From Piromyces finnis finn (lineage: Eukaryota > Fungi > Neocallimastigomycota): a stretch of 64,000 nt of DNA. A model generated the notes under the pieces. It ran no database searches. It was not told the DNA's origin and was given only the letters and a program-made list of their open reading frames with translations. How positions within the stretch are numbered: position 1 is the stretch's first letter; each line of letters begins with the position of its first letter. This document shows positions 4,150-57,572 of the stretch, piece after piece. Location of the stretch: contig MCFH01000082.1 in assembly GCA_002104945.1 (NCBI GenBank), positions 120,886 to 184,885 on the forward strand. The letters are read 5' to 3'. The position numbers were made by a program, and so were the translations under genes.

Positions 4150-4155
4150 TGAAAA

Positions 4156-4810: not shown

Positions 4811-4911
4811 TTTACATACTATTTTTTATTTAAACGACTGGTAGAGTATGATGTTTTTTTTTTATTAAAATGAAAAAGTACGCTTTAAAGGTAAAAAAAA
4901 ATATGTATTTT

Positions 4912-32352: not shown

Positions 32353-35300
32353 TTAAACTTGTTGATATTTAACATCAACGTTTTTGTTATTTTTAATTTG
32401 TTTTTTGATTTGACGGTAGTATTTATAGGCGAAGCATCCAAGAACTAAAGCAAGTAAACCGGATTTACCATATACATACATATTAGTCTTCAAATCATTT
32501 AATTCACCAATTGTTTCAACAGCGTTTGGTAATGCGTTTGTGATTATTGCGTCATTAATTGAATCCCTCTTAGTAAGAATTTGTCCATCAATTTCTTCAA
32601 GTTCTTTTTCACCCATAGCTCTGAGTTTATTAACAACAAAGGATGGAGCACCAGCGGCTTCAGCTAAATCAGCAGCTCCTGCTAAAGTATAATCTCTACC
32701 TTGAGCTTCAGCTCTAGCTTGTGATTCTCTAGCCTTTTCAACTGCGAAATCTGGAGCTCCAAAAGCCTTAGCAATCTTACCAATATCAAAACCACTAAGA
32801 TCTCTCTTCTTAAGACCCTTTTGTCTGTTAATTTCTTCAAGTTCCTTTTCACCCATAGCTCTAAGTTTTTCAACAACAAAAGATGGAGCACCAGCAGCTT
32901 CAGCTAAATCAGCAGCACCAGCAATAGTAAGAGTTCTACCTTGAGCTTCGGCTCTAGCTTGTGATTCTCTAGCTTTTTCAATAGCAAATTCTGGAGCACC
33001 TAAGGATTCAGCAATCTTACCAATGTCATAACCTTGATAATCTCTCTTAGTAAGAATTTGTCCATCAATTTCTTCAAGTTCCTTTTCGCCCATAGCTCTA
33101 AGTTTTTCAACAACAAAAGATGGAGCACCAGCAGCTTCAGCTAAATCAGCAGCTCCTGCTAAAGTATAATCTCTACCTTGAGCTTCAGCTCTAGCTTGTG
33201 ATTCTCTAGCCTTTTCAACTGCGAAATCTGGAGCTCCAAAAGCCTTAGCAATCTTACCAATATCAAAACCACTAAGATCTCTCTTCTTAAGACCCTTTTG
33301 TCTGTTAATTTCTTCAAGTTCCTTTTCACCCATAGCTCTAAGTTTTTCAACAACAAAAGATGGAGCACCAGCAGCTTCAGCTAAATCAGCAGCACCAGCA
33401 ATAGTAAGAGTTCTACCTTGAGCTTCGGCTCTAGCTTGTGATTCTCTAGCTTTTTCAATAGCAAATTCTGGAGCACCTAAGGATTCAGCAATCTTACCAA
33501 TGTCATAACCTTGATAATCTCTCTTAGTAAGAATTTGTCCATCAATTTCTTCAAGTTCCTTTTCGCCCATAGCTCTAAGTTTTTCAACAACAAAAGATGG
33601 AGCACCAGCAGCTTCAGCTAAATCAGCAGCTCCTGCTAAAGTATAATCTCTACCTTGAGCTTCGGCTCTAGCTTGTGATTCTCTAGCCTTTTCAACTGCG
33701 AAATCTGGAGCTCCAAAAGCCTTAGCAACCTTACCAATATCAAAACCACTAAGATCTCTCTTCTTAAGACCCTTTTGTCTGTTAATTTCTTCAAGTTCCT
33801 TTTCGCCCATAGCTCTAAGTTTTTCAACAACAAAAGATGGAGCACCAGCAGCTTCAGCTAAATCAGCAGCACCAGCAATAGTAAGAGTTCTACCTTGAGC
33901 TTCGGCTCTAGCTTGTGATTCTCTAGCTTTTTCAATAGCAAATTCTGGAGCACCTAAGGATTCAGCAATCTTACCAATGTCATAACCTTGATAATCTCTC
34001 TTAGTAAGAATTTGTCCATCAATTTCTTCAAGTTCCTTTTCGCCCATAGCTCTAAGTTTTTCAACAACAAAAGATGGAGCACCAGCAGCTTCAGCTAAAT
34101 CAGCAGCTCCTGCTAAAGTATAATCTCTACCTTGAGCTTCGGCTCTAGCTTGTGATTCTCTAGCCTTTTCAACTGCGAAATCTGGAGCTCCAAAAGCCTT
34201 AGCAACCTTACCAATATCAAAACCACTAAGATCTCTCTTCTTAAGACCCTTTTGTCTGTTAATTTCTTCAAGTTCCTTTTCACCCATAGCTCTAAGTTTT
34301 TCAACAACAAAAGATGGAGCACCAGCAGCTTCAGCTAAATCAGCAGCACCAGCAATAGTAAGAGTTCTACCTTGAGCTTCGGCTCTAGCTTGTGATTCTC
34401 TAGCTTTTTCAATAGCAAATTCTGGAGCACCTAAGGATTCAGCAATCTTACCAATGTCATAACCTTGATAATCTCTCTTAGTAAGAATTTGTCCATCAAT
34501 TTCTTCAAGTTCCTTTTCGCCCATAGCTCTAAGTTTTTCAACAACAAAAGATGGAGCACCAGCAGCTTCAGCTAAATCAGCAGCTCCTGCTAAAGTATAA
34601 TCTCTACCTTGAGCTTCGGCTCTAGCTTGTGATTCTCTAGCCTTTTCAACTGCGAAATCTGGAGCTCCAAAAGCCTTAGCAACCTTACCAATATCAAAAC
34701 CACTAAGATCTCTCTTCTTAAGACCCTTTTGTCTGTTAATTTCTTCAAGTTCCTTTTCACCCATAGCTCTAAGTTTTTCAACAACAAAAGATGGAGCACC
34801 AGCAGCTTCAGCTAAATCAGCAGCACCAGCAATAGTAAGAGTTCTACCTTGAGCTTCGGCTCTAGCTTGTGATTCTCTAGCTTTTTCAATAGCAAATTCT
34901 GGAGCACCTAAGGATTCAGCAATCTTACCAATGTCATAACCTTGATAATCTCTCTTAGTAAGAATTTGTCCATCAATTTCTTCAAGTTCCTTTTCGCCCA
35001 TAGCTCTAAGTTTTTCAACAACAAAAGATGGAGCACCAGCAGCTTCAGCTAAATCAGCAGCTCCTGCTAAAGTATAATCTCTACCTTGAGCTTCAGCTCT
35101 AGCTTGTGATTCTCTAGCCTTTTCAACTGCGAAATCTGGAGCTCCAAAAGCCTTAGCAACCTTACCAATATCAAAACCACTAAGATCTCTCTTCTTAAGA
35201 CCCTTTTGTCTGTTAATTTCTTCAAGTTCCTTTTCGCCCATAGCTCTAAGTTTTTCAACAACAAAAGATGGAGCACCAGCAGCTTCAGCTAAATCAGCGG

Positions 35301-35766
35301 CACCAGCAATAGTAAGAGTTCTACCTTGAGCTTCGGCTCTAGCTTGTGATTCTCTAGCCTTTTCAATAGCAAATTCTGGAGCACCTAAGGATTCAGCAAT
35401 CTTACCAATGTCATAACCTTGGTAATCTCTCTTTTCATGTTTAATGAAATCATTATTGGTTATTTTACTCATTATTGTGTAGTTAATAGCATTAGTCATA
35501 AAATTGAAGAAATTGAAAATGACATCTGAGAACATAACTATGCAATATTGACCAATAGACTTAATATCCTTCTTACTAGTACCATAAAGGAAAAGAATTG
35601 AAGAAGTAGTAAGAATAATGTTTTCAATTAAATTAGAAGTGAAAAATTGATTAAATGAAATTCTTAATAAATTGTATACACAGAAAAGAATAGATGATAT
35701 TTGAAGACCCTTTTCTAATGGGGTTTTATACTGTTTTTGATTTTCTGTAATGTTTGTCTTTTCCAT
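32353..35766 (-). CDS. Putative 4-TM membrane protein with 12 KR-delimited tandem repeats (Kex2-processed repeat protein-like)
   Basis: 113-aa hydrophobic N-terminus ending in KR; 6 x (80 aa + 79 aa) units, each ending in KR (477-bp period); 70-aa tail with a TM segment and terminal YQQV. Confidence 0.9.
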   Translation of the reverse strand: MEKTNITENQKQYKTPLEKGLQISSILFCVYNLLRISFNQFFTSNLIENIILTTSSILFLYGTSKKDIKSIGQYCIVMFSDVIFNFFNFMTNAINYTIMSKITNNDFIKHEKRDYQGYDIGKIAESLGAPEFAIEKARESQARAEAQGRTLTIAGAADLAEAAGAPSFVVEKLRAMGEKELEEINRQKGLKKRDLSGFDIGKVAKAFGAPDFAVEKARESQARAEAQGRDYTLAGAADLAEAAGAPSFVVEKLRAMGEKELEEIDGQILTKRDYQGYDIGKIAESLGAPEFAIEKARESQARAEAQGRTLTIAGAADLAEAAGAPSFVVEKLRAMGEKELEEINRQKGLKKRDLSGFDIGKVAKAFGAPDFAVEKARESQARAEAQGRDYTLAGAADLAEAAGAPSFVVEKLRAMGEKELEEIDGQILTKRDYQGYDIGKIAESLGAPEFAIEKARESQARAEAQGRTLTIAGAADLAEAAGAPSFVVEKLRAMGEKELEEINRQKGLKKRDLSGFDIGKVAKAFGAPDFAVEKARESQARAEAQGRDYTLAGAADLAEAAGAPSFVVEKLRAMGEKELEEIDGQILTKRDYQGYDIGKIAESLGAPEFAIEKARESQARAEAQGRTLTIAGAADLAEAAGAPSFVVEKLRAMGEKELEEINRQKGLKKRDLSGFDIGKVAKAFGAPDFAVEKARESQARAEAQGRDYTLAGAADLAEAAGAPSFVVEKLRAMGEKELEEIDGQILTKRDYQGYDIGKIAESLGAPEFAIEKARESQARAEAQGRTLTIAGAADLAEAAGAPSFVVEKLRAMGEKELEEINRQKGLKKRDLSGFDIGKIAKAFGAPDFAVEKARESQARAEAQGRDYTLAGAADLAEAAGAPSFVVEKLRAMGEKELEEIDGQILTKRDYQGYDIGKIAESLGAPEFAIEKARESQARAEAQGRTLTIAGAADLAEAAGAPSFVVEKLRAMGEKELEEINRQKGLKKRDLSGFDIGKIAKAFGAPDFAVEKARESQARAEAQGRDYTLAGAADLAEAAGAPSFVVNKLRAMGEKELEEIDGQILTKRDSINDAIITNALPNAVETIGELNDLKTNMYVYGKSGLLALVLGCFAYKYYRQIKKQIKNNKNVDVKYQQV

Positions 35767-38700: not shown

Positions 38701-39238
38701 TAATTATTATATACATACATTTATTATTTAGTAGGCATCATTTATTTTCATTTACAATAATGGTAAAAATTATGTTACTTCTTGGCTAATGTATATAAAA
38801 AATAATAATATTTTAATGATAAACTTTTGAAAAAAAAAAAAAAAAAAAAAAAAAAAGATAAAAATATTAACTATACAAACATATAGTATTATCAGTATTG
38901 GATTGATTTTATTAAATTCATTGACAGATTTTTAATAAATAATTAAAAGAAATATATCTAATAAATAAATAAAAAAATAATACCATACAATAATAATGTT
39001 GTTAGTTATAACAAAGACATAAAAACTATTAAAAAGTACTGAAAAATGTATATTAAATAATACTTTATATATGAAGTGTTATGAGTTTAAAAGTGGGAAA
39101 TAGTAATAGTAATAGCAATCGGTAAAAGTATAAAAGATCGTTTTTAATATTTCAATTAAAAGAAATTGTTTTTTTTACAAACTTTCCAAAAAAAAAAAAA
39201 AAAAAAGAAAATTTTATTAATTTTTATTATTAAAAAAA

Positions 39239-40221
39239 TGTAAAAGTTTAAGGATAACTAGGTTAGAAAAAAATAATATTTTATTAAAATAATCTTAATT
39301 TGTTTAAAGCGAATAATTGAATGTTTTAGTTATTAAAGTTATTTCTTTGTTAAATAATGTATTAATAAATTTATAAAATAAGATTATTTATTCATAAAAT
39401 TTTTTTAAATATTATTTATTAATAATATTTAATAATAATTGTTAAGTATTATTTATTATTAGTATTAATATTAATAATAATCTTTAGAATTAAACTCATA
39501 AAATATTCTAATCTATTTATACTACTTGTAAATTTATATTTAATAATACTAAAACTTAAACTTAAGCCTTATTCATAATTATTAAATTAAGTATTGTTTA
39601 TAATATTAATAATATTAATTACTATTTAATTATAATATAATTCATTGAATATAATTATAATAGTTATAATCTTTGAATTCAAAGATAATGAAATATCTTA
39701 TTGAAATAATTGTTATAAAATAAAAATAATTAGTTCCGGATAATATTTTTAATTTAATTAAAACATTAATTTTTATCGTTGGGTAAATGATTTATGTTTG
39801 ATACATCAGGATTGATTACTAAATAAACAATTAATCATCAATAACAAAATATCTTTAAATTGGAATATATCGTGAACCAGAAGAGATATCAACCTAATTT
39901 AAGATATATTATTGATATTTTGAGAGTGGCTTTCTAATGAACCCATTTTTATCCAACTCACTCTTATCCAAAAATCGCTATTCGTTGTAGAGTTATAATT
40001 GTTTTTTGTTATTAAATTATGACCTTCAGGGTTAAAGTTATTTATTATAAAGATTCCTATGGGTTAAGGTCATGTTACTTGAATTTTTAATTTTTTTTAT
40101 ATCCTTCAATATTGTTTTATATTTTTTAAAATTTGATAATAATTAATTTTTTTTTATTTTAAAAGGAATTTCAAAATTTCAAGTGATCTTGAGATTGCAG
40201 ATTCCACTATTATCCGTGACA
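39239..40221 (-). mobile_element. Solo LTR, family D (983 bp), TSD AAAAA
   Basis: Termini TGTAAAAG and CCGTGACA; reverse-complement homolog of 55429-56558; AAAAA at 39234-39238 and 40222-40226. Confidence 0.8.
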
Positions 40222-40275
40222 AAAAAACATCATGCATTACGGTCGTTAAAATAAAAATAGTACGTAAAAATTTTA

Positions 40276-41418
40276 TGATGCGTTGACCGATATATTTGTG
40301 AATAATATAATGTTTTTAATAAATAATAAATTCTATATTATAATGATGAAACAATAAATTTAAAATAAAATAAAATATGTTTTATAATTAACAAATAAAT
40401 CACTCAAAACTCGAAAATAAACTCTTATTATGTTTTAAATTAAATCTTTATTATATTTTATAATTTATTTATTATCTGTTTATGGTCTTTTTATTCTCTA
40501 TTTATTGTCCCCCCTTTATAAAGAAGAATTTTATCTTCCTTTTATACATTTTCATTTATTACATGTATTATTATTTTTAACTATTAAATGTTATTATTAC
40601 TATTGTTATTATTTATTAAAATTAAAAGAATAAATTAAAATTATGTCTTAGTATTATAAAATATTATAGAATATTACTTATTTGATTTTCTTATTACTTC
40701 AAAATGTTTAAATTTAGAAAAATTATTATAAATTATCATTGACTATCATTAAATGTATAATACCTTGAATAAAATAATTAAAATTTAAAATTAAAATAAT
40801 ATTAAAATAAAATTAAAATAAAATTAAAATAAAAATTTAACAAAATTAAAATATTAAAAGTATCAATTATTATAAACACTCATTTTATACAGAAACATAA
40901 AAGAGTTCTGTATTTTATCTTTGGAATTGTTATTATTGTTCTATTTCCAGGTTTTAAGTTTATCATTTTAGTAATAATTACTCAATTAGTTATTTTTTTA
41001 ATTTATAAGTTTAAGAGTATTTCTAAAGAACACTTGGATAAACACTAGAATTAATAATTTGATGTATATCATTTTATTTTTAGTTTATTTATTCATTTTT
41101 ATTTATTTATTATTATTTTATTATTTTAGTACATTATTGGATTAAGTCGTTTTATTTTATTTAATAATTTATTTTATTTAATAATTTATTTTATTTAATA
41201 ATTTATTTTATTATTATCACTATTAGGTCGTTTTTACTCAGAATTTATTATATAATAAAGATAATATTATTTATTTAAAGAAAGGGTTATATTTTCATAA
41301 AATTATTATTCATTCATCTTTAAGGGTTATTATTGTTTATTTTTATTATAAGTTACTATGGGTTAAGTCGTGTTTATTCAGCTAGTTTTTATCATGTTTT
41401 TATGTGAGTAGCGTATCA
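40276..41418 (-). mobile_element. Solo LTR, family A, TSD TTTA
   Basis: Reverse complement of 3032-4149 (near-identical over ~850 bp, more diverged at the U5 end); TTTA at 40272-40275 and 41419-41422. Confidence 0.9.
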
Positions 41419-41569
41419 TTTATGATAAATAATAATTATAAATATATTATACATTTGATATTAGTAGAAAATTTTATTATAAAATAATTATTAAATAATT
41501 TTATATAGTTTATTATAAAAATATAATTTACATAAAATCAAATATTTTATAAATTTATATATTTGATTG

Positions 41570-41573
<4 letters not shown>

Positions 41574-41621
<48 letters not shown>

Positions 41622-41755
41622 TTCCGAGTGCATTTCTCCCATCGATCAGAGTTAGCTCCAATGGTGGTTCTTAGAGAAACGTTGGCTCATTCCTATTGCT
41701 AGGTGGTTGTGACCCTCCTGGTCTGTCATACTGTTTCTTCAGCTTCGACGCTCAC
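41574..41755 (-). mobile_element. Short poly(A)-tailed retroposed insert (137-nt body plus ~45-nt poly(A)) with a 13-bp TSD
   Basis: ATTTGATTGGGTT at 41561-41573 and 41756-41768; the uninterrupted LTR B copies have this site once. Confidence 0.88.
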
Positions 41756-42185
41756 ATTTGATTGGGTTAAATTATAAAAATAATTTTTAATATAATAATA
41801 TTTTTTAGTAGAAAATGAGAAGACTTAGATTATTAATAATAAGTTAAATTTTAATAATAGTTAATATAATTAATTAGTGAATACATAATAATATTTAAAA
41901 GACAAAAATAAGTTTTTATATAATAAAAATTATTGTTAAAAAGAGCGTAAGAACAATAAATAAAAGAAAATATAAAAACGAAATTAAACTTGTCTAATTT
42001 GTAATTATTGTGTTAATAATAAATAATATTTTATAGAATAAATCTGGTGTTATTATTCTATATAAATATTATTAAAATAATAAAACTATTAAAATTATAA
42101 AACAAATTAAATATATTAAATAAAACTAGTAGATATTGTTAAAGCTCGTACAATAGCTGTCGAGATAAAACAATATAAGATAACA

Positions 42186-43183
42186 TGTTAAGTTTTTGGA
42201 TTTGGTTATGCGGCCAGGTCAGAATGTTATCAATTATATAGTAAATATGTTTTTTAAGAAATTAAATTTAAATATAAAATAACCCTTTAAACTTCCAAAT
42301 GAGAAATTAATATTTATTCTTTAGAATAACTTTTTTTATAAAATTTTATTTATTTATTAATAATAATATAAATGATAATATATTTAATAACTATATAATT
42401 AAGATTATAACTATAATCTTTACAAAGAATTAAAATCGAATTCAATTCATTCTATTTTATATTCTTTGTTCAGATTATTAAATTGATAAAAATAAAGTAT
42501 TACATGTAATATGTTAATAATATAATAAGATTGTTTGTTTGTTTGTTTGTTTGTTTTGTCATGACATAAAATAAAATAAACATATGATTAATCATTTAAA
42601 CACTTGATCCATTAACCTATTTTATAATAATTAAAATTATTTAATTTATAAATGTTAACCGTTACACCTAAATGGTTTAGTTCTATTTTTAGTAACAGTC
42701 ACTATCATTAATTAAATTAATATAATTAGAATTTCTATTGATATCTTTTTAATTTTCGTCAAGTCATAAGAAATGTCTATGATCCATACTTGATATCATA
42801 TTAATTTTAATTTACTTATTAAAATCTTCGAATGATCATATCTTCCTTAAATGACCTGTTAGAAGGACCGCGATTGTACCAAAATGTAGCTTTTTCCTTA
42901 AGCTTTCTAATAAACCTGGTTTCATAGCCGTATCACTTACAGCCGTAGCGATCGTTTTTGGCGAGTTACACCTTGTTTCGTGTTTGTTTATTTTTGGTTA
43001 AGGGTTATAGTGTATTGATATTAAATTTTTTGAAATCATAACCCTTTCACTGAACCAAAATTTAAAAGGTGACTTTTAAAGGTGTTTTAAAATAATTATT
43101 GGGATTATTTAATTCTAATTATTATGTTTAATTAATTATAGATATTATCTGAATTTGTTTTAAATCCAGTTAATATCTTCACA
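42186..43183 (-). mobile_element. Solo LTR, family E (E0, 998 bp), TSD TAACA
   Basis: Near-identical reverse complement of 56566-57561; TAACA at 42181-42185 and 43184-43188. Confidence 0.93.
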
Positions 43184-43238
43184 TAACAGAAGAAGTAGTT
43201 AAAAAGTTGTAATATAACTACCAATCCGTTATCATTTA

Positions 43239-44903
43239 TGATATAATTTGATAATAATCTTAATTTTGAATTTTACTTCAAAAAGTGATTATTATATTAT
43301 ATCTTTTGTTATAACTATATAAGTTATATTGATTAAGATTTAAAATCGTTTTTATAAAAATTAATAAAATTGTTTTGTTAAAACACTAAATTGTTTTATT
43401 AGAAACACTTGTTTTTCTAATATTTAAATATTTAAAATTTTATTTATTTAAGTATAAAAGTGATTATTAAAATTATAAAATATTAATCTAACTATATAAT
43501 ATTTCTTTATTATTAATAATAATAATGATTAAAATAAGAATATTTACATGTATTTATATTTTCTTTTGAATTTAAACTATTTACATTAAAACAATAAAAT
43601 TAATAACTATTTACAATAAAAGTAATTAGAAATAACAATAAAAGAAATAATTAAAAGTTAAAGAATATAAAAAGTTGTTTATTTTACAATTAATTAAAGT
43701 AATAATAACATGAATTATTATATTTGTTTACTTTTAAAGTGTAATTTACTAACGAAGTTATTAAACATTTAATTTAACAATTAATTTAACAAGAGTTATA
43801 TATTTTGATCTCGATTAATTAAAGTTTATTATTTTTTTTCAATAATCAAAATATATGCAGTGTTTAGGATTAATTTTATTTAAGAATTTTGGTAAAGTAC
43901 TTAATTAAACTATAACTTGTTTTAAGTTACTTTTAGGGTTAACTTAAAAATCAGGTATAATAATAATTTTATATTTATTAATTTCATTATTTATCATTTT
44001 GTAGTAATTATATTGTAATGTATATAATAAATAGTACAATATAATTACTTATTGATAACTCAATATTAAAATTTAATATTAAATTATATGTATATAGAAA
44101 GAAAAAAATAATAAAAAAAATTAAATATAGAATTAAGATTAGAACTTAGCGAGTTTATTATAAGGATTTATAATAAACAACAAAAACACAAATGGGAAGG
44201 AGGATAAGAGTGAGATGTATTAAAATTATGTTTTAATAATATGTTTTTTATTAAAATAGAATTATTTGTTATTTATTATAATTAATTTTTCTTATAATAA
44301 TAACTCTTGAATTTCTAAAGAATTTCAAGAGTGTCTTATTTATATTTTTATTAGAAATTAAGGTTAAATAAATGGGTTCTAATCTTAACAAATTAAATGT
44401 TTAGGAAAAGACTAGAAGAAAAACCTAAACAAGTTTTCGACCAATATTCTAATCATATTAGTCATCGTGTAAATTTTAAGTAAAACCAATTATAATAATC
44501 GGGAAAACCTTAAAATACCGATTTCCTAAAGTAAATCCGTGTTTAGATATAATATGTAAATTAATTAGTAATACACAATTAAATTACAGGATTCTTATAT
44601 ATAAATATTATTTAAAAATCAAATGTATAAAATATTATTTAACTAAATAAATTAAATAAATAAATTAAGTGCATAAAATATTATTTAACTAAATAAATTA
44701 AATAAGTAAATTAAGTGCATAAAATATTATTTAACTAAATAAATTAAATAAATAAATTAAGTGCATAAAATATTATTTAACTAAATAAATTAAATAAATA
44801 AATTAAGTGTATAAAATATTATGTAACTAAATAAATAAATAAATTATTAAACTAATAAGAAATATTAATTATTTAGATTGAAATAATTATTATTTCTTAC
44901 ACA
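43239..44903. mobile_element. Putative solo LTR, family G (1665 bp), TSD TTTA, with an internal 46-bp tandem repeat
   Basis: TG...CA termini flanked by TTTA on both sides; homology to 4156-4810; 46-bp units start at 44627, 44673, 44719, 44765 and 44811. Confidence 0.7.
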
Positions 44904-45868
44904 TTTATGATAACGGATTGGTAGTTATATTACAACTTTTTAACTACTTCTTCTGTTATCTTATATTGTTTTATCTCGACAGCTATTGTACGAGCTTTAA
45001 CAATATCTACTAGTTTTATTAATTTATTTTAAGTTATTTTATAATTTTAATAGTTTTATTATTTTAATAATATTTATATAGAATAATAACACCAGATTTA
45101 TTCTATAAAATATTATTTATTATTAACACAATAATTACAAATTAGACAAGTTTAATTTCGTTTTTATATTTTCTTTTATTTATTGTTCTTACGCTCTTTT
45201 TAACAATAATTTTTATTATATAAAAACTTATTTTTTGTCTTTTAAATATTATTATGTATTCACTAATTAATTATATTAACTATTATTAAAATTTAACTTA
45301 TTATTAATAATCTAAGTCTTCTTATTTTCTACTAAAAAATATTATTATTCTTTATATTAAAAATTATTTTTATAATTTAACCCAATCAAATATATAAATT
45401 TATAAAATATTTGATTTTATGTAAATTATATTTTTATAATAAACTATATAAAATTATTTAATAATTATTTTATAATAAAATTTTCTACTAATATCAAATT
45501 TATAATATATTTATAATTATTATTTATCAAGATTTCCTCCCCTAAGATACGACTTAGTGGTAGCTGATAAAAATATTCATAAATAATAATAAATATATAA
45601 GTTTTTGATATTTTTATACTAAATATTTAAAAATTTAAATTTTTTTTTCTATATATATATATATATGATAAAAATAATATAAAATAAGGTTTATAAAAAA
45701 AATGATGAAAAATTTGAAAATTTTTATTAATAAAATTTTTTTTTCAAAGAGAAATAAAAAAAATGAAGTGAAATTTTGTTAAATGTCGTAGTGTAAATAT
45801 TTTTGTGTTTTTATATATTTTTGTAATGTAATTGTCGTATTATTTGTATATAAATGTTTAATGTGGTT

Positions 45869-47860
45869 TTATCTTTCTTTAAACTTTGAAAATAGATGAA
45901 ATTTTGATTTTAATATGTCGAAATAATGTCGTTTTAAAATTGAAGTTACTGATTTGATATAATCTTTTAGATTGAAAATAATTGAATTTGAAATACTTTC
46001 TTTTACACTTTTTATTATACTGAAATATATATTCTTAAACGAATTATTTGATGAATTTTTGATTATATCATTTTGTTTATTTCGCTTTTTTCTTGATTTT
46101 AATTTCCTGTTAATATTAATATTCAAATGATTATATTTTAGAATTTTACTTTTATTTTTATATATCTTGATTTTGTGGCATTTTTCGTGAATAATTGGCG
46201 TTTTTTCTGCTTCATCACGGCCGACAAGATTTGACTTATTAATTGAAAATTTAATAAGTGAATCGTTTTTAATTCTTTTTGGAAATTTGCTGAAATTTGA
46301 ATGAAAAATGTGATATTTTGGATAAAAATATTTATTTTTAAATTTGAATAAATGTCGAAATTTAATTGAATAAAAAAGTTTGTTTTTATTGTTAAAAGTC
46401 GAATTAAAATTTTGAATTTTGATATTATTATTAAATGAATTAAATTGAGATTCATTAATATTTGATGGATTGAAACAATGAATCATTGAAATATTTGAAA
46501 GATTATTTTTATTTTGTTTAAAATTTGAGGGACGAGCAACCATAATAGGAGATGAATTAGTTTTCATGTAGAGAGAGTCATCATCAGGATCAATGTATAA
46601 TCGGTGATTCTTTTGAGATTGACGACCTAATATAATATCATAACATGAATCTTCATCTTCTAGAATCCAGAATAATGCATAGATTTTTAAATCACCAAAT
46701 TTAAGAGTTAAATTAACAGCTTGATTTGTTGAAATAACTTGTTTGCTAGCTAATTTAAAGAAAGTTCTCTTAAAATGTGTAATATTATGATTTGCTGATA
46801 TTAAATTAAAGAAGGATTTAGTAATAACATTAACATCAGAACCAGTATCTACTAAAACTCGGACAATGTTATTATCAATTGAGCCAATGACAGAAGCAAT
46901 GTTGATTTTATTAATGACATTAATTTCGTTATCTGCTATATTGATAATATCATCATCATTGTCATTATCAGCATCATCATTGTTTTCATTATTTTTATTA
47001 TTATAATTTTCATTAATGATATTAATAAATGAATTAATATCATCATCATTAAGATCCATATTTTGAATGGCGTTTATTTTCCGAACATCATTTGGATCAA
47101 GCTTTAAACCTTTGGCACAAAGTCTTCTGATGATAGGACTGACTGCAAGCAATTGTGCAAAAGAGATACCAGCATTTGTATTATTAAGGGCATCAAAAAT
47201 ATTATATTCTTTATTTTTGCCCAACATGACAATAGAACGTAGGAAGTCATAATAGTTGCTTTTGGGAGACTTTTTGCTATCTATAACTTCTTCTAATTCG
47301 TCCTGTTTACTTGGTATATCTGGACCAATTCTTCTTTTATTTCTGGTTTCTTTATTTTTCATCTTAGCAGAGGAAATATTCTTGCCTGCAATTACCGAGG
47401 GGTCTAAGATGTCTAGGCGGGAAGTAGTGGTATGAAAATTTGAATTTTTCTCATTACGAATTTCTTGCTGTTCTTTCATCTGAGTGGCCTTTGTATGTAT
47501 TGGTAATGGATTTTCTCGAAGTTTCTTTTTCTTCGACTGAGTCACGTGATCCTCATCATCACTTTCATCACTTTCTTCAGAACTTTTTCTCTTGAATGCA
47601 TAAATAAGGTTTTCGATGTCCTTATCATCGACTGTATTTGTCACGTGATCACGTGTAACGTAATCCTTATCATCTTCATTGATTGGATCATCCACCAAAG
47701 GGTTAGAGAATTTTTCTTTAGAATTTGGAAATTTTTTTGTTTTATGGAAATCACGTGTATCATCAACATAGATTTGCTCATTAATGTTGTTGATGTTGTG
47801 GGTTTGGTTATTATCAATTTTGGAGTTAGAAGGGGAAGATTGAGAACTTCCCCCATTTAA
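45869..47860 (-). CDS. Aspartic protease ORF of element B, reached by -1 frameshift
   Basis: Frame is open from the slippery site at ~47860; VLVDTGSDVNVI and YDIILGR retropepsin motifs; basic low-complexity tail with no RT motifs. Confidence 0.8.
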   Translation of the reverse strand, partial: LNGGSSQSSPSNSKIDNNQTHNINNINEQIYVDDTRDFHKTKKFPNSKEKFSNPLVDDPINEDDKDYVTRDHVTNTVDDKDIENLIYAFKRKSSEESDESDDEDHVTQSKKKKLRENPLPIHTKATQMKEQQEIRNEKNSNFHTTTSRLDILDPSVIAGKNISSAKMKNKETRNKRRIGPDIPSKQDELEEVIDSKKSPKSNYYDFLRSIVMLGKNKEYNIFDALNNTNAGISFAQLLAVSPIIRRLCAKGLKLDPNDVRKINAIQNMDLNDDDINSFINIINENYNNKNNENNDDADNDNDDDIINIADNEINVINKINIASVIGSIDNNIVRVLVDTGSDVNVITKSFFNLISANHNITHFKRTFFKLASKQVISTNQAVNLTLKFGDLKIYALFWILEDEDSCYDIILGRQSQKNHRLYIDPDDDSLYMKTNSSPIMVARPSNFKQNKNNLSNISMIHCFNPSNINESQFNSFNNNIKIQNFNSTFNNKNKLFYSIKFRHLFKFKNKYFYPKYHIFHSNFSKFPKRIKNDSLIKFSINKSNLVGRDEAEKTPIIHEKCHKIKIYKNKSKILKYNHLNININRKLKSRKKRNKQNDIIKNSSNNSFKNIYFSIIKSVKESISNSIIFNLKDYIKSVTSILKRHYFDILKSKFHLFSKFKER

Positions 47861-47866
47861 TTTAAA
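47832..47866 (-). promoter_or_regulatory. -1 programmed ribosomal frameshift signal
   Basis: Heptamer U UUA AAU in the gag frame (47866-47860) directly before the gag stop; hairpin GGGGAAG/CTTCCCC (47853-47832) starts 6 nt downstream; protease ORF is in the -1 frame. Confidence 0.75.
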
Positions 47867-48706
47867 TGGTTTTGGGTTTTGAGGAGGGTAGCTATGATTT
47901 TGTTCACATCGGTCATTTCGTTTGGGCAGAAGCGGGCATCATGTCCTTTCTGGTTACAACGGTGGCAGATATGAATTTTCATCTGGGCAAAGCTTTTGGT
48001 CAAAGCATCCAGATCTGATTCTTTAGCTTCTTCTTTAGTAGTCTTTTCATTATCAGTACTACTATTATTTTCGTTATTATTATAAGAGGTTTTATCTTCA
48101 ACTTCTGTTTTTCTCTTATAATAATTATTTTTGTTTTGAGTTCTTTTATTGGGTACATATTCATCATCACTTTCATAAGCAGATAGAAGCTCATCTGCTT
48201 TAATAGCAATGACCATAGCATCCTTTAAAGTTTTTGGTTGTTTGTTAATAAGAGAATTTAATATAGAAGTTCTCCTATTAAAAGCTTTTGTATAAAGAAA
48301 AATAAGTCTTTCTTCAGAAGGCTTGTCCCTTTCTTTAATTTCTTTCAAAAGGTCGTTAAAAGAACGGTTAAATTCTCTAACAGAGCTTTTGTTTACTTTT
48401 ATTTTTTCTAACTTATTTAGGTTTCTATTAGAGGTTTTATCATCCTCAAATAAGTTAGATATTTTATTGATAAATTCATTATAAGATAGGGATCTATCTT
48501 CATAATAAATATCAAAGATCCTTTGAGTTACCGGTAGTAGCAAGCAAAGCAATTCTCTTCTTTTCTTTTTCAGAAAGAGCTAAGTCTTCTAAGATATCTT
48601 CAAGTTCCATTTTCCATCTGAAGAACTTAGTATCTTTCTTGCCAAGAGGGCTTATTTCTTTAGCCATACTAGCGGCTCTTTCAAAATTGTTTTTATTTTC
48701 AGTCAT
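47857..48706 (-). CDS. Gag of element B with CCHC zinc knuckle; split by one frameshift near 48530
   Basis: ORFs 48706-48512 and 48552-47857; CHRCNQKGHDARFC knuckle. Confidence 0.8.
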
Positions 48707-49442
48707 ATTTAGTAAATAAATAAGATAATTATACTAAATATACTAATTAATAGGAATTATTTAAATTTTCGGCTTTCCCACGGGACGACTGAGGTTCTCC
48801 ACCACTTGATAACGGATTGGTAGTTATATTACAACTTTTTAACTACTTCTTCTGTTATCTTATATTGTTTTATCTCGACAGCTATTGTACGAGCTTTAAC
48901 AATATCTACTAGTTTTATTAATTTATTTTAAGTTATTTTATAATTTTAATAGTTTTATTATTTTAATAATATTTATATAGAATAATAACACCAGATTTAT
49001 TCTATAAAATATTATTTATTATTAACACAATAATTACAAATTAGACAAGTTTAATTTCGTTTTTATATTTTCTTTTATTTATTGTTCTTACGCTCTTTTT
49101 AACAATAATTTTTATTATATAAAAACTTATTTTTTGTCTTTTAAATATTATTATGTATTCACTAATTAATTATATTAACTATTATTAAAATTTAACTTAT
49201 TATTAGTAATCTAAGTCTTCTTATTTTCTACTAAAAAATATTATTATTCTTTATATTAAAAATTATTTTTATAATTTAACCCAATCAAATATATAAATTT
49301 ATAAAATATTTGATTTTATGTAAATTATATTTTTATAATAAACTATATAAAATTATTTAATAATTATTTTATAATAAAATTTTCTACTAATATCAAATTT
49401 ATAATATATTTATAATTATTATTTATCATTTAGATCAGTGAA

Positions 49443-49514
49443 GGAGGGTTGGCGCAACGGTAGCGCGTCCGCCTCCAGAGCGGAAGGTTGGGTGTTCGAA
49501 TCACTCACTCTCCA
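49443..49514 (+). tRNA. trnW-CCA: tRNA-Trp (CCA), intronless, copy 1
   Basis: Full cloverleaf: acceptor GGAGGGT/ACTCTCC, D stem GCGC/GCGC, anticodon stem TCCGC/GCGGA with loop CT-CCA-GA, T arm GGGTG-TTCGAAT-CACTC; followed by TTTTT. Confidence 0.96.
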
Positions 49515-50042
49515 TTTTTATATTTTTCATTAGATGATAAAATTATTCTTTAATACCTATTATTATTATTATACTAGTTTAATTAAATATTAATAAAAAA
49601 TACATTTTATTTCCGTTATCTTTTAACAAGTATTATTAATTAGAGTTAACATAGTTCATAATTAAATCCTAGAGTTAACTCTTATACTCAAATAATTATA
49701 ACAAAAGAAAAGTTCACTTTTTAATATTTTCATTTAAAAAAAAAAGAAAGTTCTATTAATTTTTATTATTAAAAAAGGATTGGTTCTAAGAAATTTAATT
49801 TTTTTGAAATTTTATATAAAAAAAAAGAAAAAAGACTTTTTTTTGGTGAAATGAAAACTTTTTTAAATTTCGAAATAAATAAAGAAAAGCAAAAAAAAAA
49901 AAAAAAACGAAAATAAACATTTTATATTTTATTAACTGAAAGCTACTAAACATTAAAGGATAGTGTGATAAATAAAAAAAAAATATTATAAATTTCAATT
50001 TTAATTTCAATATTTGTTATATATAATTTTTTATAAAGTATA

Positions 50043-50807
50043 ATGAAAAAGAAGATTATTTTGATACTATCAACCTATTTATATTTTATGGTATTTTGTC
50101 AATATGGATATACTCGTACAATTAGTGTTGAATCTGATGATATTCCAGCTGAACTTATTTATCGTGGTGAAGCATTTAGTCGCACCATAATTAAAGATTT
50201 TGATTTTAATAATTATAACTCACCTGATGATGATGATGAATATACTTATGTATGTAAAGATGATGATTGCATTTATATACAGCCGAATAGTAGCAAACCT
50301 TTTATTGAAATTGAAGATAAAAATGGTTATCTTCATAGATATATATTTACTTCCTATATAGATGATTATGAAGTAACTATAGCTAATTATATCGAGTCTA
50401 ATATAAATAAAACTATTCATGTTTCTACTGATTGTAAAACAGATAGTCAATGTTTTTCAAATAAATGTATAAACAATAGATGTATAAAGAATTTAGAAGT
50501 TAATATTGAACATTGTGTTTCTTTATATATAAGACCTAGTGCTTTCTATTCATCGTATATAGGATATACTAAATGTGGTCGGATGCCTGGTGAGCCTTGT
50601 ATAAAAAATTCAGATTGCTCTTCCAACAAATGTTACAGAGGAACATGCATAACTAATAACTATACACCTTCTGATAGTGATGGGATAGGTGAGGCATTTT
50701 CAAAACTAGGGTTTATAGCAGCATTAATAAGTATTTTAGTAATTGATTGTTGTTATTGTTGTTACGTAAAACATAATGAAAGATATTATATTAAAGCTAA
50801 TAAATAA
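50043..50807 (+). CDS. Cys-rich single-pass membrane or secreted protein (Dickkopf-N/EB-like Cys modules)
   Basis: Hydrophobic N-terminus; CKTDSQCFSNKCINNRC and GEPCIKNSDCSSNKCYRGTC; C-terminal TM GFIAALISILVI followed by DCCYCCY. Confidence 0.75.
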   Translation: MKKKIILILSTYLYFMVFCQYGYTRTISVESDDIPAELIYRGEAFSRTIIKDFDFNNYNSPDDDDEYTYVCKDDDCIYIQPNSSKPFIEIEDKNGYLHRYIFTSYIDDYEVTIANYIESNINKTIHVSTDCKTDSQCFSNKCINNRCIKNLEVNIEHCVSLYIRPSAFYSSYIGYTKCGRMPGEPCIKNSDCSSNKCYRGTCITNNYTPSDSDGIGEAFSKLGFIAALISILVIDCCYCCYVKHNERYYIKANK

Positions 50808-51230
50808 ATAAAATTTTTACATTTTTTATACTATAATTATTAGTATAATAAAATTCATTTAAAAATATATAAAAATAAGATACTATTAAAGTTTATAAAA
50901 CACTGTATTTTTTAATTGTCAAAAAAAATAGTAAACAAAAAATATTGGTATTTTATAAAAGTTATAATATAAAAGTTTAATATAGCTATATATATTTACT
51001 ATATAAAGTTAATTTTTAATGAGAACTTATTATTACTTTTTTTAAAATAGCAACTATTTTTAAAACCATGTAAAAAAAAAATTAAAAAATTGAAAAGAAG
51101 TAAAAATAGAAATAAAATAAAAATAAAAATTAAAGGATAATGAATAAAAATGTTAGTTTATTATTATTGTTAGTTAAATATTTTTGAATATATTAATTAT
51201 TAATAAATAACATTTATTTAAACTAAATTA

Positions 51231-51270
<40 letters not shown>

Positions 51271-52295
51271 TGTATTATATATATTTCTTAAAATATTTTT
51301 TTAATTATTTATTAAAAATGAAATTGACTATTTATTAACATTTTACTTTAATTTGTTGAGAAGATATTTTGAATTAAATAATATGTTCCCAAAAAGATCT
51401 ATGTATTTAATGACGATTATTAAAAAAAAAAAAAAAAAAAAAAAACATGTACAAGAGTAATTTAAAAGTTTACTATTCAAATGAAAAGTTTGTTATAATT
51501 TCCAATATCTACAGGGAAAATGAGGATTGCTGAATAGTATGTAGTCCGGTTCCCATAAAGGAATTGTTAAAAACATATTCTTAGGTTATTGAAAACGCTA
51601 GCACTGTTACAGGCATGATATAAAAATAATAGGTGACCTAAATCTATTATATTTGTAAATATTAAATGTATATAGTTTTTTATTAAATAGTAATTCCTTA
51701 AATGTAAAATAATGAAATATAAAAGAATAAGGAAGATATATAATCCATATAATTCCAGCCTTATAATTGTACAATTAATCATTATGTAAGCCCTGATAGT
51801 ATAAATAGACTAGAAATAAATATTATAAAAAGGGCTTCTTGTTTTTTGTTAATTTTTAATAAAATAGTTATAAATGACTGGATTATCGTTTTAGCATATA
51901 AACGGAATAATATATTAAAGCGTGATTAATAAAATTATGAACAAAATATATATTATTTAAAGATTCTTTCTACATAAAAATAACTCTTATCATGTCCATT
52001 ATCATATTGATTGAAACACATAACAAAATACTACAATTATATGAAAATAATTGTACATTTATGTATTTATAAATACAAATTAATAATAAAATATAATAAT
52101 AATATATATAAAAAAAAATAATATTATAGATTAATAATAATAATACTAATACTAATACTAATACTAATACTAATAATATAAAATACATTATATACAATAT
52201 TATTACTGTAAAATAAATTTAATTAATAAATAATTTTATTAATAAGGTTAACAAAGAGAAAAAGTTACATTGTAAATTACAGTTATATAATGAGA

Positions 52296-52794
52296 TGTAA
52301 GGTTATGTGATCATAAAAATAAAATAAAAATCTCTATAACACGTAGACATTACGTTTACAACACTTTTAATACATGTTTATGTTTTCATAAGTTAGTCAC
52401 GTAATTAAGACTAAGCCTTAAGTTTAACTTTAGTATTATAAAATATATTATGAATATAATCATGTATTAATAGTTATTTTATTATTAAATGTAAAATTAC
52501 AAATAGTATAAATAATTTAGAATAGTTTTATGAAATTAAATCTTTGTAAAGATTATTATCTTATTAATACTTAATAAGTATTGCTATTAAATAATCTTAT
52601 TATTATATTCTTTAATAATATATTATTTAAATAAAATAAAAGAAATTATTTTAACCATAATACATAATTTAATTATTCATTTATAAAACAATTAAGATTA
52701 TTTTAATAAAACATTTTTTCTAACCTAGTTATCTTTAATCTTTTATTTAATTTAATATTTTAATATTAAATTAAAGTTTAGTAAAACTTTTACA
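52296..52794 (+). mobile_element. Probable D-related solo LTR (499 bp)
   Basis: 3' half matches 56080-56558, including TCTTTGTAAAGATTAT and the end AAAACTTTTACA; candidate TSD TGAGA/TGATA has 1 mismatch, so the left end is uncertain. Confidence 0.5.
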
Positions 52795-53218
52795 TGATAA
52801 TATTTGTATCTAAAAAAATAAGAAAATAAAATAAATGATTTTTATACTTGTTCATTTGCAAGTATTAGTTAATTTTTAAAAATATAAAGTTTATTATATT
52901 TAATTATAAAATTATAATATTATTTAATAACTCTCGTATTATTAAATAATTAAGAATTAATACATATTGTATGCATCATAGAAGTTATATAAAAAAAATA
53001 TTGTTTTATTAAAATAATAACAATTATTAATTAATTATTAAATAATTTAAAGATATATTTTATATCTTTACATCTATTTAGAAATAATAGCTTATTAAAA
53101 TTTAATAAATATTAAAGATATTATAAGTATATATATATAAAAAAATATATATACACCAAACAAAAAAAATATTTATAAATATAAAACTTTATAAATTAAA
53201 ATACTTGTAAAAATATAC

Positions 53219-53600
53219 TAGGTGCGTATAGAGCTCATATACAGCTTCAATGTATAATTAACTAGTTTCAGTTGGTTAGAAACTATAGTTATTAATCACT
53301 GAAGTATTTGTAAAAGTAGGACGAATGTGAATAGCACGCTTACTTGGGGGAAGGGATTGTTAGTGTGATAAAAAGCACGTAATACAGGACTCTCAAGCTG
53401 AATACTTTAACAAACTCTGGCAAATAAGGAACTTTAGTCACCGAAGGCTAAAGGTTTGTTGTGAAGGTAAATCTACATAAAAATATATAGTTTAAATATA
53501 TTTTGAGGTCTAGTATATCACCTCTAGTTAGTAGCTTTTGTCGGCTATTTAAATTGTTGTAAGGCATTAAAAAGCGAAAAATAAATCCTGTAAATAAAGT
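53219..53600. other. Unassigned GC-enriched, hairpin-rich island (possible ncRNA)
   Basis: Several stems (TAACTA-GTTTC/GAAAC-TATAGTTA, CTTTAGTC/GGCTAAAG, GAGGT/ACCTC, TAGC/GCTA) in very AT-rich flanks; no ORF in the track. Confidence 0.35.
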
Positions 53601-54142
53601 TTTATATTTAATTATTTTTTTTAAAGAAAAAGAAATACATATATTATAAAATAATAATTATAATATATAATAAAATTATTTAATTAATATTGTAAATATA
53701 ATCATCGGTCAAATAATAATAAAAATCAAAAGTATTGTTATAAATTTTAAATAATAAAAAGCAATAATATTAAGTTGTCTTTTTTTAGTTAGTTTTTAAC
53801 GAAAAATAACTTTTGTTTATCTTTTCGATTAATTAATTATTAAGATAATTAACCGAAAAGCAAAAAAGAAAAAAGACTTTTTTTTGCTTTTCTTTATTTA
53901 TTTCGAAATTTAAAAAAGTTTTCATTTCACCAAAAAAGTCTTTTTTCTTTTTTTTTTTTTTTAAATGAAAATATTAAAAAGTGAACTTTTCTTTTGTTAT
54001 AATTATTTGAGTATAAGAGTTAACTCTAGGATTTAATTATGAACTATGTTAACTCTAATTAATAATATTTATTAAAAGATAACGGAAATAAAATGTATTT
54101 TTTATTAATATTTAATTAAACTAGTATAATAGGTATTAAAAA

Positions 54143-54214
54143 TGGAGAGTGAGTGATTCGAACACCCAACCTTCCGCTCTGGAGGCGGACGCGCTACCGT
54201 TGCGCCAACCCTCC
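54143..54214 (-). tRNA. trnW-CCA: tRNA-Trp (CCA), copy 2, identical to copy 1
   Basis: Exact reverse complement of 49443-49514; followed by a T-run terminator. Confidence 0.96.
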
Positions 54215-54229
54215 TTTACTGATTTAATT

Positions 54230-54279
54230 TGATACGAAGAAAAATATTAGCTTAATTCTATAAATGAATATAGAAAGTG
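54230..54279 (+). mobile_element. Probable LTR terminus (element H) 16 bp upstream of tRNA-Trp copy 2
   Basis: Begins TGATACG like LTR A; interrupted after 50 bp by the E1/D/E2 stack; the other end is not in the window. Confidence 0.5.
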
Positions 54280-55423
54280 TGTGAAGATATTAACTGGATT
54301 TAAAACAAATTCAGATAATATCTATAATTAATTAAACATAATAATTATAATTAAATAATTTCAATAATTATTTTAAAACACTTTTAAAAGTCACCTTTTA
54401 AATTTTGATTCAGTGAAAGGGTTATGATTTCAAAAATTTAATATCAATACACTATAACCCTTAACCAAAAATAAGCAAGTACGAAATAAGGTGTAACTCG
54501 CCAAAAACGATCGCTACGGCTGTAAGTGCTACGGTGATGAAACTAGGTTTATTGGAAAGCTTAGGAAGAAAGCTACAATTTGGTACAATCGCGGTCCTTC
54601 TAACTGATCATTTAAGGAAGATATGATCATTTAAAGATTTTATTAGGTAAATTAAAATCAATATGATATCAAGTATGGATCATAAATATTTCTTATGACT
54701 TGATGAAATTAAAAATATATCAATAGGAATTTTAGTTATATTAATTTAATTAATGATAACGATTGTTACTAAAAATAGAACTAGACCCATTTAGGTGTAA
54801 CAGTTAACACCTATAAATTAAATAATCTTAATTATTATAAAATAGGTTAACGGCAAGTTTTATTAGAAATAATTTTGAAAATAATAATTATTTAATTATA
54901 ACAAATATGTTATGGTAATATCAATTAATAATGATGAATTATTAATTGAATAGTTTTTATAATTACTAATTAGGATCAACTGTTTAAATGATTAATCATA
55001 TGTTTATTTTATTTTATGTCATGACAAACAAACAAACAAACAAACAAACAAACAAACAATCTTATTACTTATTTAATTATATTACTAATATATTACATGT
55101 AATACTTTATTCTTATTAATATCAATTTAATAATCTGAACAAAGAATATAAAAGAGAATGAATTGAATTCGATTTTAATTCTTTGTAAAGATTATAGTTA
55201 TAATCTTAATTATATAGTTACTTATAATATCATTTATATTATTATTATTAAATAAATAAAAAATTTATAAAAAGTTATTTTAAAGTAAATATAAACTTTT
55301 CAATTTTCATTTGGGAGTTTAAGGTGTTATTTTATAATTAAATTTAATTTCTTAAAAAACATTTTTACTATATAATTAATAACATTCTGACCTGGCCGCA
55401 TAACCAAACCCAAAAACTTAACA
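54280..55423 (+). mobile_element. Solo LTR, family E (E1, 1144 bp), TSD AAGTG
   Basis: TGTGAAG...CTTAACA termini; homologous to E2 and E0; AAGTG at 54275-54279 and 55424-55428. Confidence 0.9.
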
Positions 55424-55428
55424 AAGTG

Positions 55429-56558
55429 TGTCACGAATACTAGTGAAAATACAATTTCAAGATCACTTGGAATTGTGAAATCACTTATGAAAATTCAAAA
55501 TCAACAAATATTTTATTTTCAAATAAATTATAAAATTTTATTAAGAAATATTTAAAAATTTAGAAAAGGTTAAAATATGACCTTAACCCTTAATAATTTT
55601 TATAATAAATAACTTTAACCCTTATCGTTAAAATGGAATAAGGAAAAACACGCGTATCTCCTCAACGAATGACGATTTTTGAATAAAAATGTTTTGGTTA
55701 TAATTACGTTCGTTAGAAAGCCACGCTCGAGACAAACAACATATCTTAAAATCAGGTCAATATCTCTGCTGGTTCACGAGATATTCCAATTTAAAGATAT
55801 TTTGTTAGCAATGATTAATTGTTTATTCAGAGAATGATCACCCCTGATATATCAAACATAAATCATTCACTCAAAGTATAAAAATTATTGTTTAATTAAA
55901 TTAAAATTATTTTCCGGAACTAATTAACTTTATTTTATAATAATTATTTCAATAACATAATTTATAATCTTTGAACTAGAGGATTATAATTATTAATATT
56001 ATATTCAATGAATTATATTATAATTAAGAAATAATTAATATTATGAATATTATAAACAATAGTTATTTTTTAATAATTAGGAATAAGTCTTAAGTTTAGT
56101 TTAAGTATTATAAAATATATTATGAATATAATCATGTATTGAAAAGTTATTTTATTATTAAATGTAAAATTACAAATAGTATAAATAGTTTAGAATAGTT
56201 TATGAAATTAAAATCTTTGTAAAGATTATTAACCAAAAATTATTAACCATAAATTATTAAATTATTAACTATAAATTATTAACTAAAGATTATTAACTAT
56301 AAATTATTAACTATTAATAATAATTAATACTTAATGAGTATTACTACTAAATAATCTTATTATTATATATTTTAGCAATATATCATTAAATAAAATAAAA
56401 GAAATTATTTTAACCATAATATATAATTTAATTATTCATTTATAAATCAATTAAGATTATTTTAATAAAACATTTTTTTTTCTAACCTAGTTATCTTTTA
56501 ACCTTTTATTTAATTTAATATTTTAATATTAAATTATAAGTTTAGTAAAACTTTTACA
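55429..56558 (+). mobile_element. Solo LTR, family D (1130 bp), TSD AAGTG
   Basis: TGTCACG...TTTTACA termini; AAGTG at 55424-55428 and 56559-56563. Confidence 0.88.
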
Positions 56559-57561: not shown

Positions 57562-57572
57562 ATAATCTTTAC
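57562..57572 (+). promoter_or_regulatory. Self-priming primer binding site (11 nt)
   Basis: ATAATCTTTAC directly after the LTR is the exact reverse complement of GTAAAGATTAT at 57326-57336, which lies ~35 nt downstream of a TATAAAA. Confidence 0.8.

Follow-up and report, generated by a model that had tools for sequence, protein, structure and literature searches.

Integration at RNA polymerase III (Pol III) start sites is a textbook harmless address for retrotransposons and has been documented in ascomycete yeasts and in Dictyostelium. Yeast Ty3 integrates, in either orientation, within a few base pairs of the site where Pol III starts, which is some 15 bp ahead of the mature tRNA 5' end, and its solo long terminal repeats (LTRs), known as sigma, remain at that position (PMC5006619, PMC5911963, PMC8632968). 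The Ty3 intasome is positioned by TFIIIB, and a vestigial chromodomain contacts Brf1 (PMC8632968). DGLT-A of Dictyostelium discoideum inserts 13-33 bp (mean 15) upstream of tRNA genes, also in either orientation, and its integrase has no chromodomain (PMC5006619). Other Ty3/gypsy elements lie a few bp upstream of tRNA starts, namely Tj1 in Schizosaccharomyces japonicus, Tyl3, Ylt1 and Tyl6 in Yarrowia, and beta and Tca8 in Candida (PMC4600332, PMC5911963). Tj1 is found 5-11 bp from the mature end with a 5-bp duplication and a fixed orientation, co-directional with the tRNA (PMC4600332). Here we describe stacks of LTR elements directly upstream of tRNA-Trp genes in Piromyces finnis (Neocallimastigomycota). 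The window analyzed is a stretch of 64,000 nucleotides that makes up the last part of contig MCFH01000082.1 (184,885 bp) of assembly GCA_002104945.1; its position 1 is contig position 120,886, and its A+T content is about 78%. A GH45 cellulase with CBM10 dockerins marks it as DNA of an anaerobic gut fungus.

Three tRNA-Trp genes are referred to below as tRNA1 (49443-49514, plus strand), tRNA2 (54143-54214, minus strand) and tRNA3, which lies in L030, a segment of the same contig (70,553-91,272) about 30 kb outside the window. Full-text searches turned up no description of such targeting for Neocallimastigomycota, early-diverging fungi or P. finnis. If true in an early-diverging fungal phylum, it would widen the known range of start-site integration and provide a new case for weighing convergence against ancient inheritance. 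It would also explain multi-kb AT-rich repeat arrays beside tRNA genes in anaerobic-fungus assemblies, and ordered stacks keep a record of insertion history.

Four LTR elements share one target site upstream of tRNA1

The tRNA1 gene, a tRNA-Trp(CCA), was called by ARAGORN and by Rfam (65.3 bits) and is followed by a T-run. Direct reading of the sequence on its upstream side gave the order TTTA (40272-40275), a solo LTR of family A (40276-41418), TTTA, a solo LTR of family B (41423-43234), TTTA, element G (43239-44903), TTTA, a two-LTR element of family B (44908-49428), TTTA (49429-49432), GATCAGTGAA and the tRNA gene. Five copies of TTTA bracket the four elements, the outermost at 40272-40275 and the tRNA-proximal one at -14 to -11 of tRNA1. 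This confirmed the order of parts in the preliminary description of the locus, which had placed four elements from three LTR families on one 4-bp target-site duplication at that distance. TTTA occupies 2.4% of window positions, and the chance that four further junctions would all be TTTA is about 3e-7. For a site picked at random, the chance of lying 10-20 nt upstream of one or the other tRNA in the window is about 3e-4. The boundaries of A and B were fixed independently of the TTTA copies because a second copy of A is available and because B has an LTR pair, a primer-binding site and a polypurine tract. Both orientations are present in the stack, with the solo B LTR opposite to the two-LTR B element. 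Beyond the outermost TTTA is the ancestral upstream flank of tRNA1 (39228-40271), which the stack has moved 9.2 kb away from the gene. This flank shares about 74% identity, inverted, with 55419-56510, on the far side of an N-family solo LTR upstream of tRNA2.

The end of another contig, MCFH01000095.1 (L027), overlaps window positions 49710-60819 for at least 11 kb at 99.8% identity. It stops about 200 bp downstream of tRNA1, which points to a haplotig or an unresolved assembly end beside the stack. It was considered both as an empty allele and as confirmation of the stack and serves as neither, the overlap ending short of the stack.

tRNA2 as an empty site

The tRNA2 gene, also a tRNA-Trp(CCA) called by ARAGORN and Rfam, is identical in sequence to tRNA1 and has ATTA at -14 to -11. 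When the stack (40276-49432) and an N-family LTR at tRNA2 were removed in silico, both loci aligned without a break through the insertion point, and the 25 nt next to the tRNA were part of this alignment. Therefore, tRNA1 and tRNA2 are an old inverted duplication, and compared with tRNA2 the entire stack is a single insertion block. Judged from its sequence, tRNA2 is a paralogous natural empty site, unoccupied at -15. The N-family solo LTR that was removed (54280-55423, plus strand, duplication AAGTG) is 61-65 bp upstream of tRNA2, outside the -15 site. A candidate LTR upstream of tRNA2, 'H', starting with TGATACG, was rejected. The preliminary description had taken that TGATACG at -16 for an LTR terminus; it is ancestral flank, homologous to 39228-40271 and colinear with the flank of tRNA1.

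The tRNA-Trp gene and the DNA downstream of it form a unit present in three copies on the contig (49430-49749 versus 54227-53949, and L030 9348-10902). A gene of unknown function encoding 228-254 aa belongs to this unit in two of the three copies, those of tRNA1 and L030. Between tRNA1 and tRNA2 the downstream flanks consist of near-identical blocks, whereas the upstream flanks are about 74% identical. This contrast suggests gene conversion or unequal ages.

A second, independent stack at tRNA3

The 254-aa gene directly downstream of tRNA1 has a paralogue, 68% identical, on the same contig in L030, and L030 carries the third identical tRNA-Trp gene (9362-9433). Upstream of this gene the order is an A LTR (299-1440), ATTT, element C (1445-9347), ATTT, AATCAGTAAA and tRNA-Trp. 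The ATTT duplication is again at -14 to -11, with a 4-mer that differs from the TTTA at tRNA1. Identity between the A LTRs at tRNA1 and in L030 is 99.4%, against 89% for the paralogous flanks. Since the A copies are closer to each other than their flanks are, and since the duplications differ, the A insertions were later than the duplication of the locus. The A element in L030 also has a primer-binding site. In another species, orthologues of the 254-aa gene were found (L031-L035), and no tRNA lies upstream of them.

Element C has 710-bp LTRs between which no difference was found, together with a primer-binding site and a polypurine tract. Its gag (L030 6221-7162) encodes 313 aa with a CCHC motif, and its pol (L030 2178-6164), in another frame than gag, is an uninterrupted 1328-aa open reading frame (ORF) with reverse transcriptase (RT), RNase H and integrase; Pfam reported no protease family in C. 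Because its LTRs do not differ and its gag and pol are uninterrupted, element C appears intact and may be currently active. Such an element, whose landing site is predictable, could serve as a vector for fungi that are hard to manipulate genetically and, if C is active and does target Pol III start sites, it would be a natural safe-harbour integration system in fungi without genetic tools.

Position-specific integration

Taken together, the two stacks hold six independent insertions from four families, namely A, B, G and B at tRNA1 and A and C at tRNA3, all at one coordinate and on two different 4-mers. Every junction is 4 bp long (TTTA five times, ATTT twice). In the P. finnis DNA examined, 6 of 8 copies of these elements are at -15, and the flank of the other two lies beyond that DNA. 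By contrast, none of the four LTR elements in this DNA that have 5-bp duplications, three of N and one of M, is at -15. Since six insertions of four families occurred at one coordinate with two 4-mers, repeated, position-specific integration that builds arrays is well supported. The nucleotide-precise insertion into multi-kb arrays that had been proposed for tRNA1 therefore held, with the empty tRNA2 and the independent stack in L030, at the same coordinate and with ATTT, as further evidence.

The innermost elements look youngest. The LTRs of the two-LTR B element match at 621 of 622 positions and those of C show no difference, and the solo B LTR, second from the outside, contains nested inserts.

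Structure of the stacked elements

The solo A LTR (40276-41418, minus strand) reads TGATACGC...GCATCA on its sense strand, with the U3 start toward the tRNA. It is 92% identical to the 3' LTR of a second A copy at 3032-4149, which starts directly after a polypurine tract, GGGGGGATCT, and has the same end as the solo A. This LTR closes the 3' part of a full-length A element (1-4149, plus strand) with its 5' end outside the window. An ORF at 983-3034 in this element encodes an integrase with Integrase_H2C2 and rve domains. The integrase of C is 57% identical to that of A. Relatives of the A integrase and of the B gag led to a metagenomic set of 25 loci, all from other species. None of the 25 holds a tRNA, a weak negative as nearly all of the contigs break at LTRs. 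The set contains integrases 55-75% identical to that of A. An autonomous relative of family B, called B' here, is known from metagenome contigs (L016 among them), and its integrase is 52% identical to that of A.

The interval 41423-43234 (plus strand) had been described as a solo B LTR. The family and solo state stood, as it contains one 622-nt LTR that matches the LTR of the two-LTR B element at 607 of 613 aligned bases (99.0%). It is not a plain copy, however, being inverted relative to the two-LTR element, with which it forms inverted-repeat pairs I1-I8, and split by two later inserts. One of these is a poly(A) retro-insert (41574-41755, minus strand) of about 136 nt plus a T-run, flanked by a 13-bp duplication, ATTTGATTGGGTT, at 41561-41573 and 41756-41768. 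It had no match in an Rfam E-value scan and no second copy in the DNA examined, and it looks like a retro-copy mediated by a long interspersed element or like a short interspersed element. The second insert, a solo LTR (42186-43183, 998 bp, minus strand) with the 5-bp duplication TAACA, belongs to an unrelated family, N; its identity to 56566-57561 is 99%, and that to 54280-55423 is 85-92%.

Element G (43239-44903) is LTR-like and AT-rich, has TTTA on both sides, is missing from the empty paralogue tRNA2, and contains a 46-bp tandem array at 44552-44892. It starts with TGAT, and its right end is CACA and not ATCA. An internal CA-TTTA-TG junction, which would have divided G into two elements, was sought within G and is not present; the left end is not the inverted image of the right end. 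G is a repeat family: another copy, diverged, occupies 4156 to about 4800, and loci L002 and L004 contain partial homologues.

The two-LTR B element is on the minus strand. Its 5' LTR (48807-49428), the U3 start of which touches the tRNA-proximal TTTA, is identical at 621 of 622 positions to its 3' LTR (44908-45529). The near-identity noted in the preliminary description is thus accurate, with the correction that the element is on the minus strand and non-autonomous, encoding gag and protease only. The primer-binding site (48786-48804), TGGTGGAGAACCTCAGTCG, begins 2 nt past the 5' LTR and is the same in L016-L025. The gag follows in two frames (47857-48706, composed of 48512-48706 and 47857-48552), has a CCHC knuckle, matches Ty3_capsid (PF19259, E 2e-10) and is 53% identical to gag P0121. 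A protease ORF (45869-47698) has the DTG motif of aspartic proteases and matched Pfam aspartyl protease families below the curated cut-offs (E 2.4e-4); its match to the 1352-aa pol of L016 covers residues 41-464 at 51% identity. The element has lost RT and RNase H by deletion, and its integrase survives as a faint, decayed remnant. The polypurine tract (45530-45545), TTAGGGGAGGAAATCT on the minus strand, has the same layout in the autonomous relative (L019, L021, L023). Because its LTRs are nearly identical yet its interior has decayed, the element was probably mobilised in trans.

Four primer-binding sites, those of A, B, B' and C, share only their first 9 nt, TGGTGGAGA, and diverge beyond (window 48786-48804; L030 about 270-290 and 8610-8630; L016 1086; L005 about 375). 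The spacing between LTR and primer-binding site is 7-8 nt in A and C and 2 nt in B. This 9-nt core is complementary to the 3' end of tRNA-Trp plus CCA, TCTCCACCA. The primer of these elements may therefore be tRNA-Trp, and other tRNAs with that end remain candidates.

Comparison with Ty3, DGLT-A and Tj1

The elements had been called Ty3-like, which the domain and structure matches support. Direct TG...CA LTRs, a primer-binding site starting with TGG and a polypurine tract are present in B and C, and in A when the primer-binding site in L030 is included. Pfam matches in C and L016, in the integrase of A and in the gag and protease of B gave the Ty3/gypsy (Metaviridae) order of pol, protease-RT-RNase H-integrase, and a gag with a Ty3-type capsid and CCHC motif. 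The best PDB match of the pol protein was Ty3 Gag-Pol (7q5b), and Pfam also returned the Ty3 capsid and Ty3 peptidase. Ty3 resembles these elements in its coding content (gag, protease, RT, RNase H and integrase), in its distance from the tRNA, in the use of both orientations and in the solo LTRs left in place. The systems differ in the duplication, which is 5 bp in Ty3 and 4 bp in the P. finnis elements, and in the primer-binding site. In addition, the P. finnis integrases lack the Brf1-binding chromodomain, for the A integrase the foamy-virus enzyme is a better-scoring match than Ty3 integrase, and P. finnis has several families on one target and multi-element stacks.

DGLT-A resembles the P. 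finnis elements in being a Ty3/gypsy element upstream of tRNA genes with a chromodomain-less integrase. However, it has a single gag-pol ORF, whereas gag and pol are separate ORFs in C (in different frames) and in L016. Its host is an amoebozoan, and the P. finnis insertions are at a single nucleotide position in all cases seen. The hosts of Tj1, Tyl3, Ylt1, Tyl6, beta and Tca8 are all Ascomycota. In contrast to the fixed, co-directional orientation of Tj1, an orientation divergent from the tRNA is seen in the two-LTR B element, in C and in both A copies (the solo LTR and the element in L030), and the solo B LTR has the other orientation. Notable in P. finnis are the duplication of 4 bp, the lack of a chromodomain, the sharing of one nucleotide by several related families, the ordering of the stacks and the presence of an apparently intact element.

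A model for the stacks and its alternatives

The block 40272-49432 is a chronological pile-up of Ty3/gypsy-type elements, and we consider it likely that their integrase is placed by the Pol III initiation complex. Placement at the start site is suggested by the distance of about 15 bp from the mature 5' end, the same as for Ty3 and DGLT-A (PMC5006619, PMC5911963). In this model, the integrase would be positioned on the tRNA gene by TFIIIB/TFIIIC, as for yeast Ty3, and strand transfer would take place near the Pol III start site regardless of the local 4-mer. Each integration duplicated its 4-bp target, so that one copy stays at a fixed distance from the tRNA and older elements are pushed outward. 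Two elements, A and B, recombined to solo LTRs, and the solo B later received its two unrelated nested inserts. The non-autonomous B would have been moved in trans by an autonomous B-type element.

Several observations weigh against this model. Every one of the six events took place at a paralogue of a single tRNA-Trp locus; these paralogues share the tRNA and the preceding 10 bp, and the targets examined in P. finnis were three paralogous tRNA-Trp genes only. In A, B' and C the integrase ends 8-41 residues past the SH3-like C-terminal domain, and the vestigial chromodomain was absent both by Pfam and in the alignment to 7q5b, which stops at Ty3 residue 1419 of 1547. Since these integrases have no counterpart of the Brf1-binding chromodomain, any contact with Pol III factors must differ from that of Ty3, as for DGLT-A. 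Relatives of the elements did not show the association. No Pol III gene was found by Rfam in about 122 kb of metagenome contigs with relatives, a weak negative as the contigs mostly break at LTRs and come from other species, and no tRNA is present in any of three distinct 5' flanks seen for the autonomous relative of B. One A-like relative is nested inside an LTR of another element. Finally, at the window start the neighbour of the full-length A element is a G-like LTR and not a visible tRNA, the other end of A lying outside the window. An exact scan for tRNA-Trp in the metagenome contigs returned two, both on contigs ending 23 nt upstream of the gene and so uninformative, and a scan of viral contigs with the A integrase and then with an 11-sequence alignment gave one distant match and then none. 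A broader claim, that a chromodomain-less Ty3/gypsy clade of Neocallimastigomycota achieves single-nucleotide-precise Pol III targeting through a contact other than that of the chromodomain with Brf1, can only be offered tentatively, and we are inclined to doubt it. In a stranger variant, the elements would be specific for tRNA-Trp genes, and the 3' end of tRNA-Trp (TCTCCA plus CCA) is also complementary to the core of the primer-binding site.

Since the sites are all paralogues of one locus, recognition of DNA sequence instead of Pol III factors has to be weighed. The integrase or a cofactor would read the 5' part of tRNA-Trp plus ATCAGTRAA upstream of it and cut at a fixed offset, with no Pol III protein involved. 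Both occupied sites are paralogous, with identical tRNAs and nearly identical -10 to -1 positions, no other tRNA species was seen occupied, and the metagenome relatives have no tRNA association, all of which would fit. We nevertheless regard this explanation as unlikely, as we know of no LTR-retrotransposon integrase that reads a specific sequence that long. The fact that tRNA2 is empty despite having the same recognition sequence is neutral between this explanation and Pol III targeting. The position also falls in the window used by Ty3, Tj1 and DGLT-A at Pol III start sites (PMC5911963). Another possible explanation is that A- and B-type elements prefer the outer edge of existing LTRs, especially G-type ends, and that the tRNA is incidental. 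All four noncoding G-type termini (window 44903 and 4156; L016 433; L002 5400) are 4-6 bp from a TGAT-type LTR end, and the contigs of L002 and L016 have no tRNA. This seems quite improbable to us, since the first insertion at each locus would have had to reach -15 by chance, twice, at about 3e-4 each, and G is not involved at tRNA3; moreover, a shared tRNA target predicts end-to-end junctions too.

The window start bears on both Pol III targeting and a preference for LTR edges. There, a diverged G-family LTR (4156-4800, plus strand) abuts the A 3' LTR with a spacer of 4-6 bp, and the pair is possibly a second stack. An Rfam E-value scan found no tRNA-like sequence in 4100-5300. The adjacency of a G end and A fits shared targeting with stacking, which predicts a tRNA just left of the window, and it fits a preference for LTR edges as well. 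Random integration followed by selection for the harmless site upstream of a tRNA, or an artefact of assembly or duplication, would draw on the repeat-rich nature of the region and on the overlap with MCFH01000095.1 from 49710, which ends about 200 bp beyond tRNA1. We find this hardly credible, given that re-use of the same 4 bp six times is inexplicable by selection, that a proper duplication is present at every junction, that the elements are mutually different and their nested inserts have duplications of their own, and that a second stack has a different 4-mer.

Other repeats in the window

The three N-family LTRs (42186-43183, 54280-55423 and 56566-57561) are all within a few kb upstream of a tRNA-Trp gene, and none of the three is at -15. 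This placement may be a looser regional preference or chance. The third of these is the 5' LTR of a degenerate N-family gypsy element (56566 to about 62000) with gag at 57597-58633 and frameshifted RT/RNase H ORFs at 60382-61804. No integrase ORF was found in it up to the window end, and there is no TGG-type primer-binding site after the LTR. Element M (15685-20369, 4.7 kb) has 217-bp LTRs that are 99.5% identical, a polypurine tract and the 5-bp duplication GTATG. It has no ORF of at least 150 aa, is non-autonomous and is distant from any tRNA.

Near the G-like LTR at the window start, an 831-aa ORF with an endonuclease/exonuclease/phosphatase domain was found at 5211-7706 on the minus strand, where the assembly has no called gene. 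It may belong to a non-LTR retrotransposon that truncates this LTR, with the T-run near 4850 as a candidate poly(A) end. In L002, a 550-bp unit (4847-5396) with 34-bp terminal inverted repeats starting from TGAT is placed end-to-end between two LTR-like ends, and its 4-bp spacers, TCAA and ATAA, are unequal. A 1137-aa ORF at 32353-35766 (minus strand) is made up of 477-bp tandem repeats, the units of which are 97-99% identical, and it caused many spurious low-complexity Pfam matches. The window also encodes a GH45 cellulase with CBM10 dockerins.

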